This document shows positions 6,269 through 36,618 of a stretch of 64,000 nt of DNA, piece after piece; the first letter of the stretch is position 1, and each line of letters opens with the position of its first letter. Location: positions 140,905 through 204,904 of the IMG/VR virus record IMGVR_UViG_3300042391_001376; one strand, written 5' to 3'. The notes beneath the pieces are model-generated. The model had not been told where the DNA came from. It was given only the letters and a program-made list of their open reading frames with translations, and made no database searches. A program made the position numbers and the translations under genes.

Positions 6269-7684
6269 TTATGTGGTTTTTACTTTTTTAGCTGGTTTAA
6301 TAACTGTAAAGTGAAAGTTGTCATCCAAATAGTCTAAAGTAAATGTTGTACCTTTAGGAACTGATGTATTGACTATAGTCTTGGCTAATGAGGTTTCTAT
6401 CTTATCTCTACGAACTTGAGCCAATCCTCTTGCCCCCTTGACAGTATCAATTCCTCTGTCAATCAAACCATTGATAACATTTTGATTATATTCAATATTA
6501 AAACCTTTTTTGTTTAATTTGTCAGAAATTATTCGCATTTCTAATTCAGCTATTCTTTCGCAGTCAGCTCTAGTTAAATGATTAAACACAACAACTTTAT
6601 CAATTCTATTTAATAATTCAGGTCTAAAGTATTTTCTTGCTGCGTCCATCGTATTTCTTTCAACCATAGACTTTAGCGGAATAGCGGATGTGGACCCCTG
6701 ATAATTTACATTCTTATTAAAACCTGTTCCAGTGCCAATCATATGATCTACTGTTTTTTCGTTACCAAGATTAGTTGTTAATATTATTATCGTATTTCTA
6801 AAGTCTACTTTTTCACCTTTGCCATCAGTAATAACTCCTTCGTCAAATACTCTTAAAAATGTATTCCAAATATCTGGATGAGCTTTTTCTACTTCATCTA
6901 TCAACACTACTGAGTTAGGATTTTTCTGGATCTGGTTAACCAACTGTCCACCCTCATCATGGCCGACATACCCTGGCGGTGAACCTATTAGCTTTTGGTT
7001 CTCATGTTTTTGTTGGAATTCACCACAATCTATTCTTACCATCGGATAATCTAATGTAAATAAATATTCATGCAACGTTCTTGCTAGATGCGTCTTACCT
7101 ACGCCTGAAGCGCCGGCAAACATAAAAACACCTAATGGTCTATTAGAATCATTTAAGCCAGCTTGAGATCTAATCAATGCTTCGCAAATGGATTCTACTG
7201 CTTCGTCTTGGCCGATAATACTATTCTTAAGATGATGTTCTAATCCAAGAAACTTTTGTTTACTTATCTTCTTGGCAGTTTGTACTGCTTTATCTTGCCC
7301 CTTAGAACTTTTCTTGTCTTTTACTTTACTGAGTATATTTTTTAGTTCTTCAAAGTTTCTATCTGTAGATAGATCATATTCTTCAGCACCAAATGAATAA
7401 GCAATAGCAACCCAGTAATCTATGTCCAAACCAGGGTTTAGCATTACACATCCCGTATACAAGGCTTCTACGCATCTTTCTGCATCTGGTCTAGACATCA
7501 ACCCCAATGCTTGGGATATTTCTGTTTTTAAATTAAAAATTACATATTGAAGAACTTTTCTTCTTCGTTCTTTTTCTGTCTTGGCATTCACTTGTGAAAC
7601 AAACGATTCTATTTCTTCTGGTTCTAATACTTTGTATTTAACGTATGCGTTAAGATCCGGAACATATATTTGGTATATCTTCAT
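6269..7684 (-). CDS. Clp-family AAA+ ATPase (ClpA/B/C second-module-only) with phage-specific N-terminal domain
   Basis: IIGQDEAV, RPLGVFMFAGASGVGKT (Walker A), KLIGSPPGYVG, LIDEVEKAHP, FRPELLNRID, GARGL. Confidence 0.92.
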   Translation of the reverse strand: MKIYQIYVPDLNAYVKYKVLEPEEIESFVSQVNAKTEKERRRKVLQYVIFNLKTEISQALGLMSRPDAERCVEALYTGCVMLNPGLDIDYWVAIAYSFGAEEYDLSTDRNFEELKNILSKVKDKKSSKGQDKAVQTAKKISKQKFLGLEHHLKNSIIGQDEAVESICEALIRSQAGLNDSNRPLGVFMFAGASGVGKTHLARTLHEYLFTLDYPMVRIDCGEFQQKHENQKLIGSPPGYVGHDEGGQLVNQIQKNPNSVVLIDEVEKAHPDIWNTFLRVFDEGVITDGKGEKVDFRNTIIILTTNLGNEKTVDHMIGTGTGFNKNVNYQGSTSAIPLKSMVERNTMDAARKYFRPELLNRIDKVVVFNHLTRADCERIAELEMRIISDKLNKKGFNIEYNQNVINGLIDRGIDTVKGARGLAQVRRDKIETSLAKTIVNTSVPKGTTFTLDYLDDNFHFTVIKPAKKVKTT

Positions 7685-8261: not shown

Positions 8262-9248
8262 ATGGATGAATCAAAAACTTTAGAAGTAATCATCGCTCAA
8301 TTAGAGCGTCAATTTGGTGCCGGATCCGTAATTACTCTCGGGTCTACCAATGTGCAAAAATGGCCTTGTATCCCCACCGGTGCTGCTACGCTAGATAATA
8401 TTCTCGGTATAGGCGGCTTACCTAGAGGGAGAATAGTGGAAATATATGGACCAGAGTCTTCTGGCAAATCCACCATTGCTCTTACTGTTATTACAGAAGC
8501 CCAAAAAATGGGCTTGAAGTGCGCTTATATAGATGCCGAGCATGCTTTAGACCCAATTTACATGACCGCTTTAGGCGTGGATTTAGATAAGTTAATCTTT
8601 TCTCAACCAGATTACGGCGAGCAAGCTTTAGAAATAGTTGACCGTCTTGTACGCTCAGGTGAAGTGGGAGTTGTCGTAATTGACTCTGTTGCTTCACTCA
8701 TTCCAAAAGCAGAGCTAGAAGGTGAGATGGAGTCCGCTCAGATGGGCCTACAAGCTCGTCTAATGGCCAAAGCGATGCGAAAGCTAGTTTCGGCCGCATC
8801 CGAGACAAAAACGCTCCTATTGTTTATAAATCAGTTGCGCAACAAAATTGGTGTTATGTTTGGTAATCCCGAAACCACTCCTGGTGGTATGGCTCTTAAG
8901 TATGCTGCCTCGGTACGCATTGACTTGCGTAAGAAGGAAGATCTTAAGGATAAATCTGGTGAGGCAATAGGAATCAAGGTTAAGGCTAAGATTATTAAAA
9001 ACAAAATGGCTCCTCCACTAAAAATTACAGAATTTGACATTCTTTACGGTAAGGGCGTGGATCAATTTGGCTGCTTGTTTGATCTTGCTTTGGGCCAAGG
9101 TATGTTCACTCAAAAAGGTGCTTGGGTTTATCTTGATGGTGAAAACTTTGCTCAAGGTAGAGACAACGCTGTAGAAAAATTAAAATCTAGAGAAGATCTT
9201 ATTATTAAGATTAAGTCTAACCTAGAGGTTAAATCACCCAATTTATAA
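8262..9248 (+). CDS. recA: RecA recombinase
   Basis: GGLPRGRIVEIYGPESSGKST, DAEHALDP, FINQLR, GNPETTPGG, KNKMAPP. Confidence 0.98.
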   Translation: MDESKTLEVIIAQLERQFGAGSVITLGSTNVQKWPCIPTGAATLDNILGIGGLPRGRIVEIYGPESSGKSTIALTVITEAQKMGLKCAYIDAEHALDPIYMTALGVDLDKLIFSQPDYGEQALEIVDRLVRSGEVGVVVIDSVASLIPKAELEGEMESAQMGLQARLMAKAMRKLVSAASETKTLLLFINQLRNKIGVMFGNPETTPGGMALKYAASVRIDLRKKEDLKDKSGEAIGIKVKAKIIKNKMAPPLKITEFDILYGKGVDQFGCLFDLALGQGMFTQKGAWVYLDGENFAQGRDNAVEKLKSREDLIIKIKSNLEVKSPNL

Positions 9249-12233: not shown

Positions 12234-12554
12234 ATGATGTGTATGGACTTTTTCAAAAAATTGTTTGAACTTATAATCTATAATAGGGAAAACGGGGAAG
12301 AGTTAGAAGAACAGGTCTTCTTGCTTGATGATGATGACTTAGAGACTGAGAGTGTGGTCACCTTCCATCCTGATGGCAATGGTAACTTAGTATTCAACGT
12401 TTTTAGTATTGAAGTGTGGGAAATGATCGATGATATTTCCGAGCTTACCGGTAGGGATAAATTTTCTATCATAGAGGGCTTGTGCGAAGAGGATGGTATT
12501 GAATCCTGGGTTATCGATCCTAGGGAGTTTCCTAACGATTTAAATGATCTATAA
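12234..12554 (+). CDS. acidic hypothetical protein
   Basis: 106-aa ORF. Confidence 0.6.
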   Translation: MMCMDFFKKLFELIIYNRENGEELEEQVFLLDDDDLETESVVTFHPDGNGNLVFNVFSIEVWEMIDDISELTGRDKFSIIEGLCEEDGIESWVIDPREFPNDLNDL

Positions 12555-12573
12555 TAATACTTATATAAGGATA

Positions 12574-12612
12574 TAAAAAAACCCCCCGGTATATCCAGGG
12601 GGTTTTTCTTTT
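12574..12612. terminator. bidirectional intrinsic terminator
   Basis: A-run, ACCCCC stem...GGGGGT, T-run between convergent genes. Confidence 0.8.
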
Positions 12613-12626
12613 ATATACGTTAAATA

Positions 12627-12821
12627 TTAGTCATTATAGCCGTAGTTGTCGAAATCATAATCTTCAACCTCAACGTAAGCTGACTTAGCTCCATAGTATG
12701 TCTTAGAGTTAAACTGATAGAAGACATCATCTTCCACGTCTAACCCTTCATAATCCTCGAACATATCCAGTTGAATATCATCCTGTGATTTTTGTGTCAA
12801 CGTACTCTTGTTGTTATTCAT
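12627..12821 (-). CDS. small acidic hypothetical protein
   Basis: MNNNKSTLTQK..., AGGA upstream; 3' part of ORF 12627..13013. Confidence 0.55.
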   Translation of the reverse strand: MNNNKSTLTQKSQDDIQLDMFEDYEGLDVEDDVFYQFNSKTYYGAKSAYVEVEDYDFDNYGYND

Positions 12822-13153
12822 TTTCTTATCCTTTTGTACTAGGCATTGATGGTTATATGATTCTTGTACATGATATCTATATGACAACAAAGATAATAGC
12901 AAAGCATGTTTACCTTTGACAACCTCTATCACAATATATTCCAAACTTTTTTTTGCCGGCCGATTTCCTATATAGGTATAAAAATAAGGGAAAAATTTTT
13001 GGTGTAAAAACATATATAAAAAAAACTAATAGGCTAAAAATATGGAAAAAATATGGGCCAGTAGTAGTGGGTATATACACACCCTTAAGATCTTTAACGT
13101 GCCCACCCGGGTATGGGGTCTTAAGGTTAAACAATTAACAAGAGGAGAGTAAT

Positions 13154-13330
13154 ATGATTACTGTTAATAACAGCAACACACCTAGCCGTGGGCCAAGGGT
13201 ATGCACATGGGGTACAGGTAAGGAATTGTCAGTAAAGCACACACCTTTCTTTCAGGTAAATGATGAAGGAAAGACTGTATGTTGGCACATGCATGCTGAT
13301 GGCACTGAGTGCAGGGTAACTAAGGACTAA
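13154..13330 (+). CDS. small hypothetical protein, first gene of early-type region
   Basis: GAGGAG RBS, 58 aa, manually translated. Confidence 0.6.
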   Translation: MITVNNSNTPSRGPRVCTWGTGKELSVKHTPFFQVNDEGKTVCWHMHADGTECRVTKD

Positions 13331-13334
13331 GTAC

Positions 13335-13408
13335 CCCAGTAATACTGTCCATTGGTGGACACTAAACAACATGAACCATACGATAGCCATGGTATGTAAA
13401 ACATTGGG
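13335..13408 (+). ncRNA. candidate structured RNA, copy A of a two-hairpin motif
   Basis: TGTCCA-TTGG-TGGACA CTAAAC ... CATAC...GTATG TAAAAC; covaries with copy B. Confidence 0.55.
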
Positions 13409-13438
13409 CTTTATTCACTTCAAACATAGGAGATAGTC

Positions 13439-13588
13439 ATGGACCATAACAGGACATCATATGCACGTACGTACCGTAAGTACCTACTGCATTGTGTAAA
13501 GCACAACATACCAGTAAATGCAAAGACATGTGCCTATGTAAGGGCATACCTAGTAGAAACATCAATCACCAATAAGGGAGGAAAGTAA
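13439..13588 (+). CDS. small hypothetical protein (49 aa)
   Basis: AGGAG RBS, manually translated. Confidence 0.55.
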   Translation: MDHNRTSYARTYRKYLLHCVKHNIPVNAKTCAYVRAYLVETSITNKGGK

Positions 13589-13590
13589 CC

Positions 13591-13944
13591 ATGTTACCAG
13601 TAACACTAACCACGTGTGAGCAGATGGCTCAGGCGTACAACACACATGCACAGTATGCCGAGGTTATTGGCAAGTACGTGTGCCATGATGGCCAGGCAGT
13701 GTGGATACAGCTTGTTGGGTGCGGTGCATCTGATAGCCATACATTCACACATACCCATAACATCCCAGAGTACATGAATAAGATGTACAATGGAAAGATT
13801 GTCCGCCTTCTAGGTGAGCGTTCATGGGATTCACGTGCACGCATGTGGGGCTACCGCTGGACCCTTCATTCAGTAAACCTATGGGAAGAGTCAGTAAAGG
13901 CTTCTCCTGCAGGTATTAAAGCCTTGTGCGGCACTAACTGCTAA
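13591..13944 (+). CDS. hypothetical protein
   Basis: 117 aa, GGAGG RBS. Confidence 0.7.
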   Translation: MLPVTLTTCEQMAQAYNTHAQYAEVIGKYVCHDGQAVWIQLVGCGASDSHTFTHTHNIPEYMNKMYNGKIVRLLGERSWDSRARMWGYRWTLHSVNLWEESVKASPAGIKALCGTNC

Positions 13945-14020
13945 TTAAGTACATTGTCTATTGGTAGACGTTAACTTCATGACCCAACCGTTAATCAAGA
14001 GGTTGTAAATCACATGGTTA
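13942..14020 (+). ncRNA. candidate structured RNA, copy B of a two-hairpin motif
   Basis: TGTCTA-TTGG-TAGACG TTAAC ... CAACC...GGTTG TAAATC. Confidence 0.55.
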
Positions 14021-14049
14021 TTTATCCAATATCAATTAAGGAGAAAGCA

Positions 14050-14325
14050 ATGAGTAAAGCAACAAAAATGTTCGTTGTTCTTATTGTCGCAATTGCGGCT
14101 TTAATAGCATCGGGCTTGCTAATCAATAAGCCAACATACTGTTACGTAAGTTCAGTTGTTGCATACGAAGGAGATACTCTTTGGAGTATAGCCAAGGCCA
14201 ATTGCTACGGCAATAGCACCACAAATATGGTTGGTGATATCGTGGACCTCAATCCAGAATTGAAGACTCGTTATTTACGAATCGGTGAATCAATTAAGCT
14301 ACCAACAGAAAACGCAGGAAAGTAA
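14050..14325 (+). CDS. LysM-domain membrane-anchored protein
   Basis: N-terminal hydrophobic helix, GDTLWSIA...LNP...LRIGESIKLP; start moved to the ATG after AAGGAG. Confidence 0.85.
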   Translation: MSKATKMFVVLIVAIAALIASGLLINKPTYCYVSSVVAYEGDTLWSIAKANCYGNSTTNMVGDIVDLNPELKTRYLRIGESIKLPTENAGK

Positions 14326-14361
14326 ACATGTCAACAAACAACAATCCAAAAGGAGAAACGA

Positions 14362-14565
14362 ATGTCTGAAGAAAATGTACCAAAACCAAGAGTGTTCACT
14401 GCCGAAGAAATTGTAGCAAAAATACTACAAGAAAAACTAAGCAAGAAAGCACTCATCAATGAATTGGTTTTTGCATTGAACGACGCAGAGGCCAACAAGC
14501 AAGAAAAAGATGCAGACATCTACTGGAATGCAATTATGGTCTTGACGAAAGGCCGAATGCTCTAA
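14362..14565 (+). CDS. hypothetical protein
   Basis: AAGGAG RBS. Confidence 0.65.
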   Translation: MSEENVPKPRVFTAEEIVAKILQEKLSKKALINELVFALNDAEANKQEKDADIYWNAIMVLTKGRML

Positions 14566-14625
14566 GATAGATTTTTGCAATCAACAGAAAAACAGTAAGC
14601 CAAAAAACAACAAAGGAGACAAGTA

Positions 14626-15153
14626 ATGTTAGAAAACAATAATAAATTCCAGTCAAGGCTGGATTTAATCTCAAAAGCTGAAATTGTGTTACATCACATG
14701 GGAGAATGGCATGAGGTTAAAATCCAATCAAATGACAATCGGCTAACAAGTGGAGCATTGACGTATACCCAATACGAAAATGTGTGTGATGAAACAAAAT
14801 CATCATATTCATTTGTTGGCATTTCAGATGATGGTGCAATTGTTAATGGCTTTATCCATGATGGATCCAATAAAATTGGTCGTGGTTATGGAGGCCAGTC
14901 ATTTGAATTGACAATGCAAGATGGATCACACAGGGTTCTTACCGGACCATGGAGTGGAAGGCCATCAGTCCACACTGCCAATAGCGGTATTCAATACACC
15001 GAGGTTAACGTTAATAATACTTTGTATGGATTCTCGAAAGAATTCATTGAAGCCATAATTGATCGGTTTAACCTCAACGCAAGCCTTGAATTGACATGCC
15101 GAGACATGGAAATTGAATTACGAGTAACAAACAACAACCAAGGAGAAAAGTAA
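14626..15153 (+). CDS. hypothetical protein
   Basis: AAGGAG RBS; GYGG..F...G....GPWS pattern. Confidence 0.7.
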   Translation: MLENNNKFQSRLDLISKAEIVLHHMGEWHEVKIQSNDNRLTSGALTYTQYENVCDETKSSYSFVGISDDGAIVNGFIHDGSNKIGRGYGGQSFELTMQDGSHRVLTGPWSGRPSVHTANSGIQYTEVNVNNTLYGFSKEFIEAIIDRFNLNASLELTCRDMEIELRVTNNNQGEK

Positions 15154-15380
15154 TGAGTGATATATTCAAATTAGGTGTGCTTGATTTAGACAGGCAAGCA
15201 TACTTTGATTTCTGCGAAAAGAACAATGGCGGATATCTTTTAAGTTCTCGCCAGCAGAAACAGTTAGAAAAGCATCTCATAATCTGGAAATTAAACACGC
15301 ACATTCAGAAATGTGGTTCGTGTGGTTGGTGTGAGAAAAATGCAAAACAATTCCTAGAAGAAAACATAAAGGGGGAGTAA
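15153..15380 (+). CDS. hypothetical protein with CxxCxxC
   Basis: stop-start overlap, RBS. Confidence 0.65.
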   Translation: MSDIFKLGVLDLDRQAYFDFCEKNNGGYLLSSRQQKQLEKHLIIWKLNTHIQKCGSCGWCEKNAKQFLEENIKGE

Positions 15381-15631
15381 TGGCAAGGTTACATTGGAAG
15401 AACTATTCCCGTTTTGCTCGGGATTCAGAGAAAGAGGTGTGGTGTGCCTTAGGCAAACACTATGTTCACATAGCTAATGCTTGGATTACGTTTTACCCAG
15501 TAAAGCGTGTGTGGTGCACCGAATGCAAAGCAGGCAGTGAAACTAGGGTCGAGAAGAAGAAACTAGTATCTCAAGCAAAGCAAACAATGAAAGACAACCA
15601 ACTATCACTATTCAACGAGGAAGGAAAGTAA
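15380..15631 (+). CDS. hypothetical protein
   Basis: stop-start overlap, RBS. Confidence 0.65.
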   Translation: MARLHWKNYSRFARDSEKEVWCALGKHYVHIANAWITFYPVKRVWCTECKAGSETRVEKKKLVSQAKQTMKDNQLSLFNEEGK

Positions 15632-15633
15632 TC

Positions 15634-16437
15634 ATGAAGCCATTCAATCCAGGGGACAAGGTACGTTCCAAGGCAAAGCCTCATATAACAGGCACTGTAA
15701 AGTGGGTTAGGTTTGAACCCAATGGAGTATCTGTTAATAGGCAAAATTCACGTGGAAAATGGAACTATGTCCAGAAGATACCAAAGGGAGGTTATACCGT
15801 ATCTATTAACTGGGATCCAGTCCCACAACTTGGTTACTACCCAGAGCGTCCTTTGCACGGTCTACAGGGGTCTACCGCAATTGAGTTAGTGCCGCAAGAA
15901 AATGTCAATCAAGAAACAACAAACAACGAAAGGAAAGAAGCCATGTCAAATCAACCAACAACAATTCGGGAGGTAAATCCGATGAAGCAGTGCAAACACC
16001 AAGTCTGGGATTGGAAATTAATTCCAGGACAAGTAAACACAGACTACAAGGCAGTTTATTGTGAACTGTGTGGAGAGCAACTGGCTCAACTTGCACCAAA
16101 GAACAAACCAATGACAGATAAGCAGATAAAGTTTATCCGGTCTTTGTTCTTGGAAGTTAAATCAAACATGACAATTGATGAGCAGGAGTCTTTGACAACA
16201 AAGATGAAAGCACATATCGATGGGACAAATGTACTCACCACCAAGTGGGCATCAGCAGCTATTGACAAGCTTAAGGCATACAAGCCTAAGCCTGTTAAGC
16301 CTGTTCAAGTCATGGAAGAGGATGAGCCATTTGGCAAAGTTGAATGTCATGTATGTGGCACGAAATACCAGCCAGAAGAAATGGGCGGATCAGGCACTGA
16401 AGTATTCACCAACGGATGCATCGCATGTCTGTATTAA
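15634..16437 (+). CDS. multi-module hypothetical protein (SH3-like N-terminus, Zn ribbons, TxKQ helical domain); internal in-frame start at 15982
   Basis: PGDKV, CELC, MTDKQIKFI...ASAAIDKL, CHVC; GGAGGT before 15982. Confidence 0.65.
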   Translation: MKPFNPGDKVRSKAKPHITGTVKWVRFEPNGVSVNRQNSRGKWNYVQKIPKGGYTVSINWDPVPQLGYYPERPLHGLQGSTAIELVPQENVNQETTNNERKEAMSNQPTTIREVNPMKQCKHQVWDWKLIPGQVNTDYKAVYCELCGEQLAQLAPKNKPMTDKQIKFIRSLFLEVKSNMTIDEQESLTTKMKAHIDGTNVLTTKWASAAIDKLKAYKPKPVKPVQVMEEDEPFGKVECHVCGTKYQPEEMGGSGTEVFTNGCIACLY

Positions 16438-16481
16438 ATCAATCAAACAATCAACCAACAACAAATGGGGAGGTAAAACCC

Positions 16482-19157
16482 ATGGAAACACCACAACAAA
16501 AGCTCAATCGTTTAACGACAGAGCCTCAACAGAAAGGAGCAGAAGTGATTGCATTCATGCATGACTTCTTCCATACCATCACCAACGACCCAACAGAGCG
16601 TGAGTCATTGGCCTATTCAACCGTAAAGAAGACGGGCAAACCATTCAAGATGGGGACAACAGTTCGCACTGGTGAGAATGGTGCATACAACCACCATATC
16701 TGGCTTATGCCAATCAACAACAACCCTACTTGGAAGTATGGACTCTTGGAGCACAAGCTTAACAGCCGCGGTAAGAAGTTCAAGCTTAAGATGATCACAA
16801 TCAATGAGCTGAAGCAGTGGATCAGCAAGGACAACGGAGACTTAGATGCACTCATCAAAGAATCCAACTTTGCTTGGGCTAATGCAACACATGCTTTCTT
16901 CTTGAAGATGCGTGAAGACAACAACTGGTCATTGGATGATCTTGGTGTCAGCGTAATCGACATGAAGAAGACATCAAAGCGACTTCAAGAAATCACACGG
17001 TTTACTCAGGTATATCGTTCAAGGTCAATGAAGTCAGTCACCACTAAGGCTTATACGAACGAATGGCTTGAGCAATACTACTCTAGCTATGGATTGAAGT
17101 ATGATCCAGCAGATGAGGTGATGTTCGATGGACCAGCCTTCATGCGCAAATCAGCATTCATCAAAGCTTGTTTCCCTATCAAAGATGCGGAAGTAAGAGG
17201 CAAGATGATTGGTGGTGTACACGGTGACAATCGCACTTGGTTGTTCCGTATGAAAATGGAAGGCTGCATGCTTAAGGGCTTGTTGCACATTGTTGAGGAT
17301 GATGAAATCCCAGCAGACATTGTGTACCATGAATCAATGGAAAAGAAGGAATTGTCCACAACAGATGGTAATTATACATTTGTAGCGTGGCCGATGCCAA
17401 CTCTGTACGAAGTAACGATTGACGATCAATCAATGATCAATAATCCATGGTTGTACACCACTGAACACCTCAAAACTACATGCGACAGTCTTTTGTCTGA
17501 CTTCAAGAAAGAAATCGAAGTGGGCAATATGCCAGAATGGATGACTGTTAGCATGGATGACCAAGAGGATCATGGAGTAGTCAACGAAGACAATGAACTC
17601 CAAGAGTGGCAAGCAAACTACATCAAGTGGCAAAAGGCTGGGTTCTCATTGTATGACAGCTCAAACTTTATTCACATGGCGTACGGTCAGCTTGCTAATC
17701 GCATGAGTGCATCAGTTAAGCGTGGTAACATCTGGTTGCCAATGTTTAACGCATTCATGGCTCCTGTCATTACTCATGAGGCATTGCAAATCATGGGTGG
17801 ACAAGAACTGCCAGAGTCAAAGTCAAATGTTGTATGGTATGACAAGCGCTTCGGTGCAATCATCCCAGGCAACCGCTTTGTTGAGACAGCAGATCTTCAC
17901 GACACATGGGACCAAGATGGTGACATGGCCAGGTTCATCCGCATTAAGTTGTGGAGCTCTTCGCCAGTTGTAACTCTCTATGGGTTGTCACACCAGGAAT
18001 TCAGGGATGGATTTGTTATCCCAGCTGACCTGGAAGTACCAACCACACCAGAAGAAGCAATCGACATGGTTGTCATCATTCGTTCACCAAACGGACCTGG
18101 TGGTTATTCAATCGAGCGTTACGATGCAGAGACAATGCCATTTATGCGTGTAAACGAGGACATGGTACAGGTAATTGACCTTAGCAAAGCAACATTGCCG
18201 ATGAGCACACTGCTTAAAGACACTATTGTTGACACTAAGCTCAATGAAATCCTGAACTCAACACAGTACACCAAGAGGGGATTCACACGGGATAACGCCA
18301 AGGACATGATTGATGCACAACTGCACAACCCTGGGTTTGGTTCATTCTCAAACTTCATGATGGTGCATGCAAGTGTGTTCGGTCCAAGCTACCCAACCTA
18401 CATGCCAGCTAGTGGTAATGACATTATCGATGCAAGCTCTCAGACAGCAAACATTGAGGCATTCCGCTTTATCAGTGGCAGCGTATCAACCATGTGGCAA
18501 TCATTGATCGATGATATGGTCAAACAAGATATCAAGATTGACAGCTACATGATGAGTCGTATCCCTGATCGGTTCAAGCATGAGTTGGAAGGTAATGTCT
18601 ATGATGGACCATTGGCAGAGCTCAGTGAGCACTACATCAAGGTACTCAAGGATGTACGCGAAGAGAAGAAGAACACCATCTATCTCCGCATGCGTTCTGA
18701 GTTAATTCCTCAACTGCAACAGTTAATCCCTACACTGTCAGATCAAACACAGGCTGTCTGTGAAGCATTCAACACCAAGTATATCCACATGTTGCGTGCA
18801 TTTGACGAGCGTAAGGCAGAAGCTAAGGCAGAAGAGACAAAGTGGTCAAGCCGCTACTTCAAGGCATGGAACGCTGTGTATTCTTCAACCGAGTTGGAAG
18901 CCATTGTCAAGATGATGGTCGATGAGATTGAAACGTCCAAGTCACCAACCAAGATGGCTGTTGCTATCTATCGCTGGATGACTGATCCAAAGATGAGCTA
19001 CGAGAGGGTGTATCACGAAGGTCGTGGCGAATACATCAAGGCCAATGCTCATCTGCGTTATGGTCTAGTTGACCGTGTAATGTTCCAAGCCGGCAAGCGT
19101 GGGCAGAAATCAATGATGGATCTGCTTATCCAGGGGCTCAAGGATCTGGGCCTCTAG
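16482..19157 (+). CDS. putative single-subunit two-barrel RNA polymerase, YonO/eukaryotic RdRP-like (paralog 1)
   Basis: KTSKRL, FDG, R...LKG, SMEK, DQDGD (17910-17924), IIRSP, FGSFSN; start set by GGAGGT RBS. Confidence 0.75.
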   Translation: METPQQKLNRLTTEPQQKGAEVIAFMHDFFHTITNDPTERESLAYSTVKKTGKPFKMGTTVRTGENGAYNHHIWLMPINNNPTWKYGLLEHKLNSRGKKFKLKMITINELKQWISKDNGDLDALIKESNFAWANATHAFFLKMREDNNWSLDDLGVSVIDMKKTSKRLQEITRFTQVYRSRSMKSVTTKAYTNEWLEQYYSSYGLKYDPADEVMFDGPAFMRKSAFIKACFPIKDAEVRGKMIGGVHGDNRTWLFRMKMEGCMLKGLLHIVEDDEIPADIVYHESMEKKELSTTDGNYTFVAWPMPTLYEVTIDDQSMINNPWLYTTEHLKTTCDSLLSDFKKEIEVGNMPEWMTVSMDDQEDHGVVNEDNELQEWQANYIKWQKAGFSLYDSSNFIHMAYGQLANRMSASVKRGNIWLPMFNAFMAPVITHEALQIMGGQELPESKSNVVWYDKRFGAIIPGNRFVETADLHDTWDQDGDMARFIRIKLWSSSPVVTLYGLSHQEFRDGFVIPADLEVPTTPEEAIDMVVIIRSPNGPGGYSIERYDAETMPFMRVNEDMVQVIDLSKATLPMSTLLKDTIVDTKLNEILNSTQYTKRGFTRDNAKDMIDAQLHNPGFGSFSNFMMVHASVFGPSYPTYMPASGNDIIDASSQTANIEAFRFISGSVSTMWQSLIDDMVKQDIKIDSYMMSRIPDRFKHELEGNVYDGPLAELSEHYIKVLKDVREEKKNTIYLRMRSELIPQLQQLIPTLSDQTQAVCEAFNTKYIHMLRAFDERKAEAKAEETKWSSRYFKAWNAVYSSTELEAIVKMMVDEIETSKSPTKMAVAIYRWMTDPKMSYERVYHEGRGEYIKANAHLRYGLVDRVMFQAGKRGQKSMMDLLIQGLKDLGL

Positions 19158-32651: not shown

Positions 32652-34331
32652 ATGACTTTAACTTTAAGACCTTATCAGATAGAAGCACTTGAATCTATTC
32701 AAAATCATCTAGACAAAGGTATAGTTAAACAACTTGTCGTTCTCCCAACTGGAGCCGGCAAGACTGTAATTTTTAGTAATATTCCTCAGACCATAAAAGA
32801 CAGTTTACCTATGCTAGTTTTAGCTCACCGTGGTGAGTTATTAACCCAAGCTAAAGATAAAATTCTTTGGTCTAATCCTCAACTGGATGTTCAGATTGAA
32901 AAAGCTGAAGATACAGCTGATCTATGCGATGTTGTAGTAGCATCTGTACCCACTTTGGGTAGAGCTGATTCTCAAAGAATATTAAAATATCCTAAAGACT
33001 ATTTTAAAACTATTATCATTGATGAAGCACACCACGCTGCTGCTGAAACATACCGTAGAATACTTGATTACTTTACTCCTAAATTTCTATTGGGTGTTAC
33101 AGCAACTCCTCAGAGATCTGACTCTGTTAGATTAACTGATGTATTTGATGAAATCACCTACTATAAAACTATTCAAGACTTGATCCAAGAAGGATACTTA
33201 TGTAGACTTGTTGGCTATAGAATAAAGACCGACACTGACATTTCAGAAGTGGAGACTTCGCATGGCGACTACATGGCATCCCAGTTGGAAGATACTATCA
33301 ATACTCCTACTCGTAACGCTATTGTTGTTAAATCTTATTTTGAGTTTGCGCAGAACAAAAAAGCAGTCGTATTCGCATCCGGTGTTAAGCACGCCAGAGA
33401 CTTGGCCGCATCCTTTGCGCAAAAGCAGATACCTGTACGAGTAATACTTGGAGACACTCCAGATGATGAACGAAAACAAGCACTTGCTGACTTTGCATCT
33501 GGTACTATCAAGGTAATAGTTAACGTTGGCGTACTAACAGAAGGGTTCGATGAGCCTTCTATCGGTGCGATTATACTTGCCCGACCAACACGTTCTTCCC
33601 TACTGTATACACAAATAGTAGGTCGTGGTACTAGACTTTACGAAGGTAAAGACAACTGCATTATCATAGATATTGCTGACACCACTAAAGGCAAGAAGCC
33701 TTTGGGATTACCAACTTTGTTGGGAATGCCACCTGAATTCGACCTGAAGGGTCAAGACCTAGTTGATGTAGCAGAAAAATATAAAGAGCTTGAAGACTAC
33801 TGTCCTGGTGAAGCTGTTCGTGTTTTATCTTTAGATGATATAGAACTAGCTTACAAACGTATCGATCTCTTTATGCCACCACCACCTAACGAAATAGTTC
33901 AAACCTATTCTCGTTTTGTTTGGGCCGAAGTAGCCGAAAATGATTTTCATTTAGGTATCAATCAGGATGAATCTATTAGAATTCATGTTGATGCTTTAGG
34001 CAGATGGACTACCACTCTAAAACAAAAAATAAAAGACGGTTCTAAAGATACTGTGCTTGGTCATCCAGAAGATATGCGTGAAGCATTTGTTCGTACCGAT
34101 AGGTGGATTACAAGTAACAGATCTTATAACCTAAATCTTTTAGATAATACTGCTGCTTGGAGATCTGATTCTCCAACAGATAAACAACACAAGATGCTTA
34201 AGCGCATGGGTATCCCAATCACTGCTGATATGACTAAAGGAACTGCTAGTCAGATTATATCTAAATACTATGAAGCTAATCCCAAGCCTAAATGGCTTGA
34301 AAACAAAATAGCTTCTAAAAAATGGAATTAA
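32652..34331 (+). CDS. superfamily II DEAH helicase (RadD/Irc3-like)
   Basis: LRPYQ, PTGAGKT, DEAHH, TATP, LTEGFDEP, QIVGRGTR. Confidence 0.95.
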   Translation: MTLTLRPYQIEALESIQNHLDKGIVKQLVVLPTGAGKTVIFSNIPQTIKDSLPMLVLAHRGELLTQAKDKILWSNPQLDVQIEKAEDTADLCDVVVASVPTLGRADSQRILKYPKDYFKTIIIDEAHHAAAETYRRILDYFTPKFLLGVTATPQRSDSVRLTDVFDEITYYKTIQDLIQEGYLCRLVGYRIKTDTDISEVETSHGDYMASQLEDTINTPTRNAIVVKSYFEFAQNKKAVVFASGVKHARDLAASFAQKQIPVRVILGDTPDDERKQALADFASGTIKVIVNVGVLTEGFDEPSIGAIILARPTRSSLLYTQIVGRGTRLYEGKDNCIIIDIADTTKGKKPLGLPTLLGMPPEFDLKGQDLVDVAEKYKELEDYCPGEAVRVLSLDDIELAYKRIDLFMPPPPNEIVQTYSRFVWAEVAENDFHLGINQDESIRIHVDALGRWTTTLKQKIKDGSKDTVLGHPEDMREAFVRTDRWITSNRSYNLNLLDNTAAWRSDSPTDKQHKMLKRMGIPITADMTKGTASQIISKYYEANPKPKWLENKIASKKWN

Positions 34332-35072: not shown

Positions 35073-35158
35073 GCCCAGGTGGCGGAACCGGTAGACGCAA
35101 GGGGCTTAAACCCCCTCGATTAGAAATGATCGTACGGGTTCGATCCCCGTCTTGGGCA
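35073..35158 (+). tRNA. tRNA-Leu(TAA)
   Basis: GCCCAGG/CTTGGGC, AGGGG-CTTAAAC-CCCCT, long variable arm. Confidence 0.95.
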
Positions 35159-35178
35159 CAAAAGAACAAAGGAACTCT

Positions 35179-36618
35179 ATGCGGAATAAGAGCCACTATC
35201 TAAAACTGTTGTTAACAACAGCATTAATGTTAACAGTTCTTGTTAACTCAAAAACTAATACAGCTAATGCTGGCGATGTTGCACCAGCTGTTTCAACTGT
35301 TAAGTTTTATCGTAAACTGACCAACTATTATTTGCCCAATTTATCATCTGCAGTCCCAAGAATGGGTGCAGATATAGCTTACAATAATAACTTCAGAGGA
35401 CAAGATTCCTTTATAGTTATTCTTGATACTGGCATTGAAGCTGTCCACTCATTCTTTGGTGGCAGAGTAGCACTTGAAGCTTGCTTCGCCGTCAAATGCC
35501 CCAATGGTCAAATATCTATGGTTGGTTCTGGTGCAGCAGCCCCAATTCATTGGCACGGTACCCATGTTGCAGGCATTGCCGCTGGACTTAACTCATCTAT
35601 TAGAGGTATAGCACCAAGCGCAAAGATCATTGCAGTAAATGTTTTTGCTGCAGATGGTTCTGCTTCAGACTCTGATCTTATTCGCGCATTACAATGGGTT
35701 GATTCTATATCTGATCAATATAATATTGCGGCTGTCAACATGTCTCTTGGTACACCAGGAACATTTAAATCTTCATGCAACTCTTATATACCAGATTTAA
35801 CTTCAATTATTTCTACATTGAAGTCTAAAAATATTGCTACTGTAGTTTCAGCCGGCAACGAAGGCCAGCGTGGAATGAGTTCCCCAGCATGCATTACAGA
35901 CACTGTCAGTGTTGCCGCAACTTACACTGCTGGAGACGGCAGTGACAGAGTTACTAGCTTTAGCAACGTTAATGAATTAACTGATTTATCAGCTCCTGGA
36001 TACAACATAGTGTCTTCCAAACTTATGGGTGCATATGGTGCATCTTCAGGAACATCTATGTCAGCACCTATGGTTGCTGGCGCATTTGCAGTATACCGTT
36101 CTAAGTTTGGCGTACAATCAGTAGATAAAGTAGTATCTGACTTTCAATCTACTGGAATCAACGCAGTAGATGATTACACCAAAATTGTTACAAAAAGAAT
36201 AGATTTTAGATCCCTGTTTTCAACACCTGGATCTACACCCCCACCACCCACCACAACTATTCCCTCACCAACTACAACAACTCCATCACCTACTACCACC
36301 GTACTTGATGAAGATGATGAATCAGAAGACTATTTAAATATTCCTTACATTATAACTTTGAAAAAGTTTGCAACTAGACTATCTTATATTCGATTAGACT
36401 TTACATACAGATATACAAATATACCTGTGTCTAATTTTATTTTAAGGTGCAGATATGCAGACAATAAAATTGTTGATAAAGTTATTAGCAATAGAAACAG
36501 AACAACTAATTCTTACTTTATATCAATATCTTCATTAAATATTCGCTCATGTAGAATGGCCGCAGTATCAACAGATGGTACTGTCGGTCAATTCTCCAAA
36601 TACATATTGGTGAAATAA
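35179..36618 (+). CDS. secreted S8 (subtilisin-like) serine protease
   Basis: LDTG, HGTHVAG, SAGN, GTSMSAP; signal peptide; P/T linker; start moved downstream of the tRNA. Confidence 0.95.
   Translation: MRNKSHYLKLLLTTALMLTVLVNSKTNTANAGDVAPAVSTVKFYRKLTNYYLPNLSSAVPRMGADIAYNNNFRGQDSFIVILDTGIEAVHSFFGGRVALEACFAVKCPNGQISMVGSGAAAPIHWHGTHVAGIAAGLNSSIRGIAPSAKIIAVNVFAADGSASDSDLIRALQWVDSISDQYNIAAVNMSLGTPGTFKSSCNSYIPDLTSIISTLKSKNIATVVSAGNEGQRGMSSPACITDTVSVAATYTAGDGSDRVTSFSNVNELTDLSAPGYNIVSSKLMGAYGASSGTSMSAPMVAGAFAVYRSKFGVQSVDKVVSDFQSTGINAVDDYTKIVTKRIDFRSLFSTPGSTPPPPTTTIPSPTTTTPSPTTTVLDEDDESEDYLNIPYIITLKKFATRLSYIRLDFTYRYTNIPVSNFILRCRYADNKIVDKVISNRNRTTNSYFISISSLNIRSCRMAAVSTDGTVGQFSKYILVK

Follow-up and report, generated by a model that had tools for sequence, protein, structure and literature searches.

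A pseudoknotted RNA leader associated with small early gene cassettes of uncultured freshwater phages

Clustered hammerhead ribozymes flank variable genes in prophages and are thought to cut long transcripts into gene-length mRNAs, and one of them sits 13 nt upstream of an early-gene start codon (PMC3088659). The pistol ribozyme is defined by three stems (P1 to P3), a pseudoknot between the P1 loop and the P2/P3 junction, and a strictly two-nucleotide (GU) junction as the cleavage site (PMC4604425). In T4-like phages, PeSL (promoter-early stem-loop) elements (i.e., a sigma-70 early promoter plus a terminator stem-loop) are short conserved intergenic motifs of hyperplastic early regions that flank novel small ORFs and mark the points where related phages differ by indels and swaps (PMC2839356, PMC4122927). 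The T4/T2 gene 32 mRNA operator is a 5'-leader H-type pseudoknot upstream of an A/U-rich stretch and the RBS (PMC3014915); it nucleates repressor binding that spreads over this stretch to the RBS. The HK022 put and lambda nut antitermination RNAs consist of about 70 nt of hairpin RNA near the start of early operons, with copies differing by compensatory changes, and put has no pseudoknot. The H-type pseudoknot riboswitch aptamers (i.e., preQ1-I, SAM-II, and SAM-V) have a 5-bp stem, a short L1, an A-rich L3 of about 9 nt, and a second stem of 4 to 6 bp.

Here, we describe an RNA element of about 75 nt, comprising a conserved hairpin and a pseudoknot, that precedes swappable small early genes in uncultured freshwater phages. 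The analysis started from a window of 64,000 nt (IMG/VR record IMGVR_UViG_3300042391_001376, positions 140,905 to 204,904), in which a sequence-only reading had noticed a repeated two-hairpin motif. That observation is confirmed: both copies are present, and their stems change in a compensatory manner. The proposed interpretation is partly supported; the element is a structured RNA lying in intergenic leaders just before an RBS, but the proposed architecture was incorrect, and none of the suggested roles (i.e., ribozyme, processing site, or riboswitch), which still form the right shortlist, has been shown.

Two copies in the window and their relatives

The 15-mer TGTCYATTGGTRGAC occurs exactly twice in the window with no mismatch. 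Copy A begins at position 13346 and copy B at position 13955, each in a gap of ~105 nt between a stop codon (TAA at 13328-13330 and at 13942-13944) and a strong RBS. The stem changes described previously are real (i.e., C-G to T-A in hairpin 1, and CATAC/GTATG versus CAACC/GGTTG in hairpin 2). A covariance model detected only these two copies in the 64 kb, even with all search filters off (E values of 9e-17 and 4.5e-9; the next hit had an E value of 1.5). Two copies alone prove little, since folding of either sequence by itself is not unusually stable (z = +0.39 to -1.0). The features of the two copies and of the adjacent cassette, all on the + strand, are as follows.

13125-13338 (+): variable first cassette (58-aa gene at 13154-13330) that ends at copy A and is replaced by other DNA in phages that are otherwise 98 to 99% identical.
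13346-13361 (+): copy A, hairpin P1; stem 13346-13351 pairs with 13356-13361, with loop UUGG at 13352-13355.
13362-13376 (+): copy A, conserved single-stranded linker CUAAACAACAUGAAC; C13370-A13371 can pair with loop bases G13354-U13353 (tentative PK-A).
13377-13396 (+): copy A, hairpin P2; CAUAC at 13377-13381 pairs with GUAUG at 13392-13396, with a 10-nt loop at 13382-13391.
13385-13410 (+): copy A, pseudoknot PK-B; loop bases 13385-13388 (AGCC) pair with 13407-13410 (GGCU), and the A-rich L3 (UAAAACAUU) spans 13397-13405.
13428-13441 (+): RBS AGGAGA (13428-13433) and ATG (13439) of the 49-aa gene (13439-13588) served by copy A.
13955-13970 (+): copy B, hairpin P1 (GUCUA/UAGAC variant), with loop UUGG at 13961-13964.
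13971-13984 (+): copy B, linker UUAACUUCAUGACC, one nucleotide shorter than in copy A.
13985-14005 (+): copy B, hairpin P2; CAACC at 13985-13989 pairs with GGUUG at 14001-14005, with an 11-nt loop.
13992-14020 (+): copy B, pseudoknot PK-B; UAAUCA at 13992-13997 pairs with UGGUUA at 14015-14020 (6 bp, one G.U), and L3 is UAAAUCACA at 14006-14014.
14038-14052 (+): RBS AAGGAGA (14038-14044) and ATG (14050) of the 91-aa transmembrane plus LysM-like gene (14050-14325) served by copy B.

The window comes from an uncultured jumbo phage. A 204,904-bp IMG/VR contig is identical over the neighboring 913-aa gene, and further relatives exhibit 98%, 70%, 67%, and 53% protein identity. We performed pattern scans of viral contigs, of metagenome contigs (sources include a freshwater Lake Erken sample), and of one genome per species, followed by a covariance-model search of all of the fetched loci (designated by L numbers below). 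Together, these searches yielded at least 70 distinct versions of the motif, all from uncultured freshwater phage contigs, including jumbo phages of about 160 to 216 kb and phages of about 37 to 40 kb. Among 185,579 bacterial and archaeal genomes, the only hit to the strict pattern was a 1.9-kb contig (L090; CAINBK010000298.1) binned into a Lake Erken "Bacteroidetes" MAG. Since these phages use strong Shine-Dalgarno (SD) sites, this contig is more likely a misbinned phage fragment than a clue about the host. Neither the 1.5-kb region nor the motif had a match among cultured phages (INPHARED).

A match to a known family, or the absence of a conserved structure among homologs, had been named in advance as grounds for rejecting the observation; both conditions were examined and the finding survived. 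Among the 4,227 models of Rfam 15 (including pistol, hatchet, twister, twister-sister, hammerhead, HDV-like, preQ1, SAM-II/V, and Downstream-peptide), only tRNAs were detected in the whole window at the gathering threshold. Positions 12900 to 14700 searched at E <= 10 gave only chance-level hits, none of which covered either full copy, and 10 other motif-bearing loci searched at E <= 1 gave nothing on the motif. A literature search found no description of the element. Motifs named "Freshwater-1" and "Freshwater-2" were described by Weinberg et al. (2017); their sequences were not compared with the element.

Covarying helices and conserved unpaired positions

Comparison of the variants revealed three helices. 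P1 has the form N-GUCCA-UUGG-UGGAC-N'. Its C-G pair changes to U-A in copy B and others, and its outermost pair takes the forms UA, AU, CG, GC, and UG. In several relatives, the whole stem is replaced (ACACGA/UCGUGU, e.g., L006:2972 and L008:454) or lengthened (GUCYGA-UUGGA-UCGAC), while the A-UUGG loop is kept. P2 (C-NNN-C paired with G-NNN-G) occurs in nine stem types. The third helix, PK-B, was missed by the sequence-only reading. Five to eight bases of the P2 loop pair with a stretch that begins 9 nt downstream of P2, across the conserved A-rich L3, and this helix has 23 different sequences (e.g., AGCCC/GGGCU, GACUC/GAGUC, UGACCC/GGGUCA, UAACCA/UGGUUA, GUAGUA/UACUAC, GGCGGU/ACCGCU, and GAUUAC/GUAAUC against GGUUAC/GUAACC). 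Relative L068 has AGCCC/GGGCU, so copy A carries one broken pair (A13389 opposite G13406), and relatives of copy B (L052, L067, L071, and L081) have UAACCA/UGGUUA.

On a clean 13-sequence alignment, 89.6% of the cells were paired and 10 pairs showed double changes; none of 500 shuffles reached these values, and slid controls gave 31 to 43%. On the model-based alignment of 58 distinct sequences, 89.7% of the cells were paired, compared with 30 to 35% when the partners were slid, and 0 of 500 shuffles reached the paired percentage or the covariation score. By helix, 97% of the cells were paired in P1 (five covarying pairs), 99.7% in P2 (four of five pairs covarying), and 75% in PK-B over the seven columns given (five covarying pairs). 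A cross-pairing control (i.e., the loop of one variant against the tail of another) was uninformative, because many variants are related. Of the 75 nt, 11 positions are at least 97% conserved (including the UAA, C, U, A, and C positions of the linker) and 29 are at least 90% conserved. A PK-only model and an unbiased pseudoknot-based scan of viral contigs found the pseudoknot only together with P1.

The previously proposed pairing of loop 1 with loop 2 is not supported, since loop 1 is UUGG in over 90% of the sequences, while the loop 2 segment varies freely and pairs with downstream sequence instead. The architecture is, accordingly, not two independent hairpins with a loop-loop kiss but hairpin P1, a conserved A-rich linker, and an H-type pseudoknot formed by P2 and the downstream pairing of its loop. 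Loop 1 may instead pair with the linker (3 bp). In the long-P1 subfamily, loop UGG faces CCA of the conserved CCAUGA; one sequence has CGG/CCG (L079:9676), six have CAG/CUG, and no mixed combinations occur. All 22 distinct sequences are paired, with two of the three pairs covarying. This pairing is tentative, because it rests on only two haplotypes at closely linked sites and because only 2 to 3 such pairs can form in copies A and B. If it is real, the element is two H-type pseudoknots in tandem.

Several lines of evidence indicate that the + strand RNA is the relevant molecule. Every copy points the same way as the flanking genes, G.U pairs outnumber A.C pairs 11 to 1 in P1, and G.U pairs also occur in PK-B (e.g., in copy B). 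In addition, a pseudoknot with an A-rich crossing strand makes sense only for RNA.

Early-operon context and cassette junctions

The element fills the gap between an upstream stop codon (usually 4 to 15 nt before P1) and the next RBS, with the start codon usually 11 to 30 nt after the end of the model. A few subfamilies insert an extra hairpin of 20 to 40 nt. In one subfamily, an extra hairpin (GAGACAC...GUGU, or CCUGUU...AACAGG overlapping the SD) lies between the pseudoknot and the RBS (L013:835-870, L063, L077:1794-, L079:13397-, L029:601-, L097, L098:5946, L099, and L110) and could be an expression platform. The genes that follow encode unrelated small proteins (i.e., membrane, coiled-coil, Cys-rich, and LysM-like). 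Contigs carry one to four copies, each before a different gene, always near the start of a putative early operon that leaves a divergent promoter region and always within about 0.1 to 1.5 kb of that region. An AACCAC that follows many copies does not covary with P1 or P2, with which its pairing was considered; it looks like part of the general CA-rich translational leader of these phages (e.g., AAUCAACCAACAACAA...GGAGG...AUG), which recurs before many RBSs of the operon (14329-16484).

In the window, the operon begins after a strong bidirectional intrinsic terminator (12577-12612; an A-run, then CCCCCCGG...CCAGGGGG, then a T-run), a small acidic minus-strand gene (12627-12822), and a conserved noncoding region (12823-13153; core at about 13055-13135). 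The terminator lies between the minus-strand gene and a + strand gene at 12234-12554. The noncoding region (also at L013:600-746, L015:4900-5118, and L017:4800-5012) is conserved at the DNA level even in relatives with only 53% protein identity, with core sequences GGGCCAGTAnTAGTGGGTAT and TTTAACGnGCCCACCCGGGTATGGGG. It folds in the window into a long hairpin (13083-13127) followed by UUAAACAAUUAAC and the first RBS, and is likely the early promoter plus a conserved 5' leader structure. In the 70% relative L013, the motif follows this leader directly (by about 10 nt). In L039 (positions 13300-13385), from a ~40-kb phage, the first gene of the operon has a P1-like but much longer hairpin (TGTCCA...TGGACA; z = -4.6) in the promoter region, followed by AAACAACAACAUGAAC and the SD, with no pseudoknot. 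This hairpin may be a relative or precursor of the 5' half of the motif.

Comparison with related phages by blastn placed the homology breakpoints at the motif edges (i.e., at about 13124, 13337-13343, about 13974, and 14038, against L009, L010, L011, and L085). The first cassette (breakpoints at about 13124 and 13337-13343) is replaced in L009, L011, and L085. L011 has about 950 extra nt between P1 of copy B and the RBS at 14038, and L085 has a third motif plus a 226-aa gene. The same LysM-like gene is preceded by different P1 variants in the window and in L085, so the motif itself is mosaic. The 67% and 53% relatives lack the motif altogether, and relatives L015 and L017 keep the same leader and downstream conserved genes without it; the element is thus tied to cassettes and not needed by the operon. 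As a by-product, seen as a pattern, the almost invariant 30-nt 5' half serves as a shared homology patch at which related phages exchange, gain, or lose cassettes.

Motif-bearing loci from the ~37- to 40-kb contigs carry portal and terminase genes, or amidoligase and amidotransferase-like genes, and show no detected protein similarity to the 64-kb window. The element is therefore shared by at least two kinds of phage from the same habitat, which favors a self-contained RNA activity or a host partner over a phage-specific protein; no phage-encoded partner common to both groups was found in the DNA sampled. Pfam, PHROGs, and PDB sequence searches of the neighboring proteins gave almost nothing, so no RNAP or RNA-binding partner was identified. 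Elsewhere in the window, most large ORFs (913, 877, and 986 aa) have no Pfam, PHROG, or PDB sequence match. The recognizable genes encode a UvsX-like recombinase (8262-9248), a ClpB-like AAA ATPase (6269-7684, minus strand), a helicase (32652-34331), and a protease-like protein (35152-36618). Seven tRNA genes lie on the + strand between 25769 and 61892 (25769, 35073, 37424, 37671, 40103, 41905, and 61820).

Possible functions and comparison with known systems

That the element is a cis-encoded structured RNA transcribed with the flanking genes is nearly certain. Its conserved pseudoknotted fold, its place in the leaders of individual cassette genes, and its position at cassette junctions rest directly on our data, whereas what it does is inferred. 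We tentatively favor an intercistronic mRNA-processing or insulating module. In this view, the polycistronic early transcript would be cut within or beside the element, either by the RNA itself (i.e., a new self-cleaving fold) or by a host RNase that recognizes it. P1 would be left as a protective 3' hairpin on the upstream message and the pseudoknot as a structured 5' end on the downstream one, so that each cassette gene would be expressed independently of where it lands. The arrangement matches that of the clustered hammerheads in prophages (PMC3088659), the downstream genes are unrelated to one another, the element is dispensable for the operon, and no shared phage-encoded partner was found. 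However, no cleavage site, catalytic core, or RNase motif was identified by computation, no transcript-end data were available, and self-scission was not assayed. The P1 stem sequence is also unusually conserved for a ribozyme helix, which would suit a protein-binding site, and the possible expression platform in a few copies points elsewhere. Since the Rfam models for all known self-cleaving classes found nothing, this would have to be a new class, and the restriction of the strict pattern to one genome contig is unusual for ribozyme classes.

A regulatory leader (i.e., a riboswitch-like or protein-responsive translational operator binding a small molecule or a conserved host or phage protein, and so tuning translation or stability of the gene immediately downstream) is a somewhat less likely alternative. 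It would fit the single copy per regulated gene at a roughly constant short distance to the RBS, the A/U-rich unstructured stretch between the pseudoknot and the SD, and the extra hairpin next to the SD in some subfamilies. The many unpaired nucleotides that are at least 90% conserved, alongside a pseudoknot, meet the "sophisticated RNA" criteria of PMC5737381, and in one subgroup (L034 and L050) we read the PK 3' strand plus CUC as able to pair alternatively with the SD. On the other hand, the unrelated downstream genes offer no common pathway or autoregulated protein, no SD-sequestering alternative is conserved across the family, the spacing tolerates insertions of 20 to 40 nt, the strict pattern is essentially absent from the bacterial and archaeal genomes, and the two phage groups share no detected phage protein in the DNA sampled. 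With respect to riboswitches, aptamer-like conservation was observed without a conserved platform or a common gene function, and ligand binding was not measured, which leaves the assignment undecided. Processive antitermination, in which the nascent element would bind RNA polymerase directly or through a factor and make it resistant to terminators, appears unlikely. A two-domain structured RNA of about 70 nt with conserved loops and covarying stems near operon starts, in two copies per genome in this phage, and its occurrence in unrelated phages (which fits a host RNAP target) would be compatible with it. Conversely, the element is absent from L015 and L017, up to four copies each precede one small gene, which antitermination does not require, and no intrinsic terminators were found downstream in the window beyond chance level. 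Readthrough was not measured, and these observations neither place the element among put-type sites (required in cis, one per early operon) nor remove it from them.

A DNA-level signal, in which P1 plus the linker would be an N4-type hairpin promoter or a PeSL-type composite terminator/promoter and only the pseudoknot would be RNA, at the 5' end of the new transcript, is similarly unlikely. The arms of P1 vary while its center is conserved, which fits a hairpin and not a dimer-binding site; each cassette would carry its own expression signal; the L039 hairpin lies in a promoter region; and the behavior at cassette junctions is the same as for PeSLs. However, the only sigma-70-like match (TGGACA-17-TACGAT) is not kept in other variants, because its "-10" lies in the covarying P2 stem. 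The element of L013 is probably transcribed, given its position after the conserved promoter/leader, and the G.U excess in P1, the apparent pairing of the P1 loop with the linker, and the absence of the pseudoknot without P1 argue in the same direction. N4-type promoters are DNA hairpins with a 5- to 7-bp stem and a 3-nt loop, recognized by a virion RNAP of that phage lineage; here the loop is 4 to 5 nt, the stem is 5 to 17 bp (L039), and the element is shared by phages of very different genome sizes, so that a phage-specific RNAP is unlikely (virion RNAP genes were not searched for). An intrinsic terminator was rejected because the tail after the pseudoknot is not consistently U-rich and the scan found no more terminators than chance. 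A uORF starting at the ATG in CATGA was also rejected, since this ATG is lost (CATAA) in several copies and the reading frames and stops differ between copies A and B. A selfish or neutral repeat (i.e., merely a recombination hotspot or mobile intergenic repeat) is very unlikely; assembled contigs often break at the element and it lies at cassette junctions, but the extensive compensatory change in three helices shows selection on RNA folding, and its orientation always matches that of the flanking genes.

A bolder possibility, which we consider doubtful, is a new class of catalytic or ligand-sensing RNA found only in lytic freshwater phages. It would be a tandem double-pseudoknot fold (P1 with loop-linker pairing, then P2 with loop-tail pairing) that self-cleaves, or switches, to uncouple each horizontally acquired early gene from its neighbors, in effect a natural, portable "insulator" that travels with gene cassettes between unrelated phages. 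Irrespective of its role, the element represents a new, well-supported structured RNA family with no match in Rfam and no representative found in cultured phages, making it a ready candidate for a new ribozyme or regulatory RNA class. It is physically linked to the gain, loss, and exchange of small early accessory genes, the part of phage genomes where host-takeover and antidefense functions usually sit, in both jumbo and small phages of the same habitat. If it is a portable expression or processing module, it would explain how such genes stay functional after moving between genomes, and it could be useful as a compact genetic insulator; if it is only a protein-binding leader, it is still a new phage regulatory signal.

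Like the clustered self-cleaving ribozymes of phage and prophage operons (hammerhead, twister, and pistol), the element is a compact, pseudoknotted RNA with many conserved unpaired bases, occurring in several copies between unrelated genes in one orientation, close to start codons of early genes. Pistol also has a hairpin whose loop pairs downstream across an A-rich linker (PMC4604425), but the element has only two local hairpins, with no enclosing P2, no P3 conserved after the pseudoknot, and no GU junction. It has no three-way junction and lacks the hammerhead CUGANGA...GAAA core, the sequences flanking P2 being CAUGAAC and UAAAACA. The element shares with PeSLs its location at indel and replacement junctions between closely related phages (PMC2839356, PMC4122927), but it has no conserved promoter hexamers, P1 is not followed by a U-tract, and its conserved feature is an RNA pseudoknot. 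It resembles the gene 32 operator (PMC3014915) as a phage 5'-leader H-type pseudoknot upstream of an A/U-rich stretch and the RBS, whereas that operator serves one autoregulated gene and the present element precedes many unrelated genes and carries an extra conserved hairpin. Compared with the put and nut RNAs, it is of similar size and position but has a pseudoknot, occurs once per cassette, and is dispensable in close relatives. Finally, its pseudoknot has the dimensions of the preQ1-I, SAM-II, and SAM-V aptamers, but the SD is not part of the pseudoknot, there is no coherent gene association, and there is an extra P1 domain.
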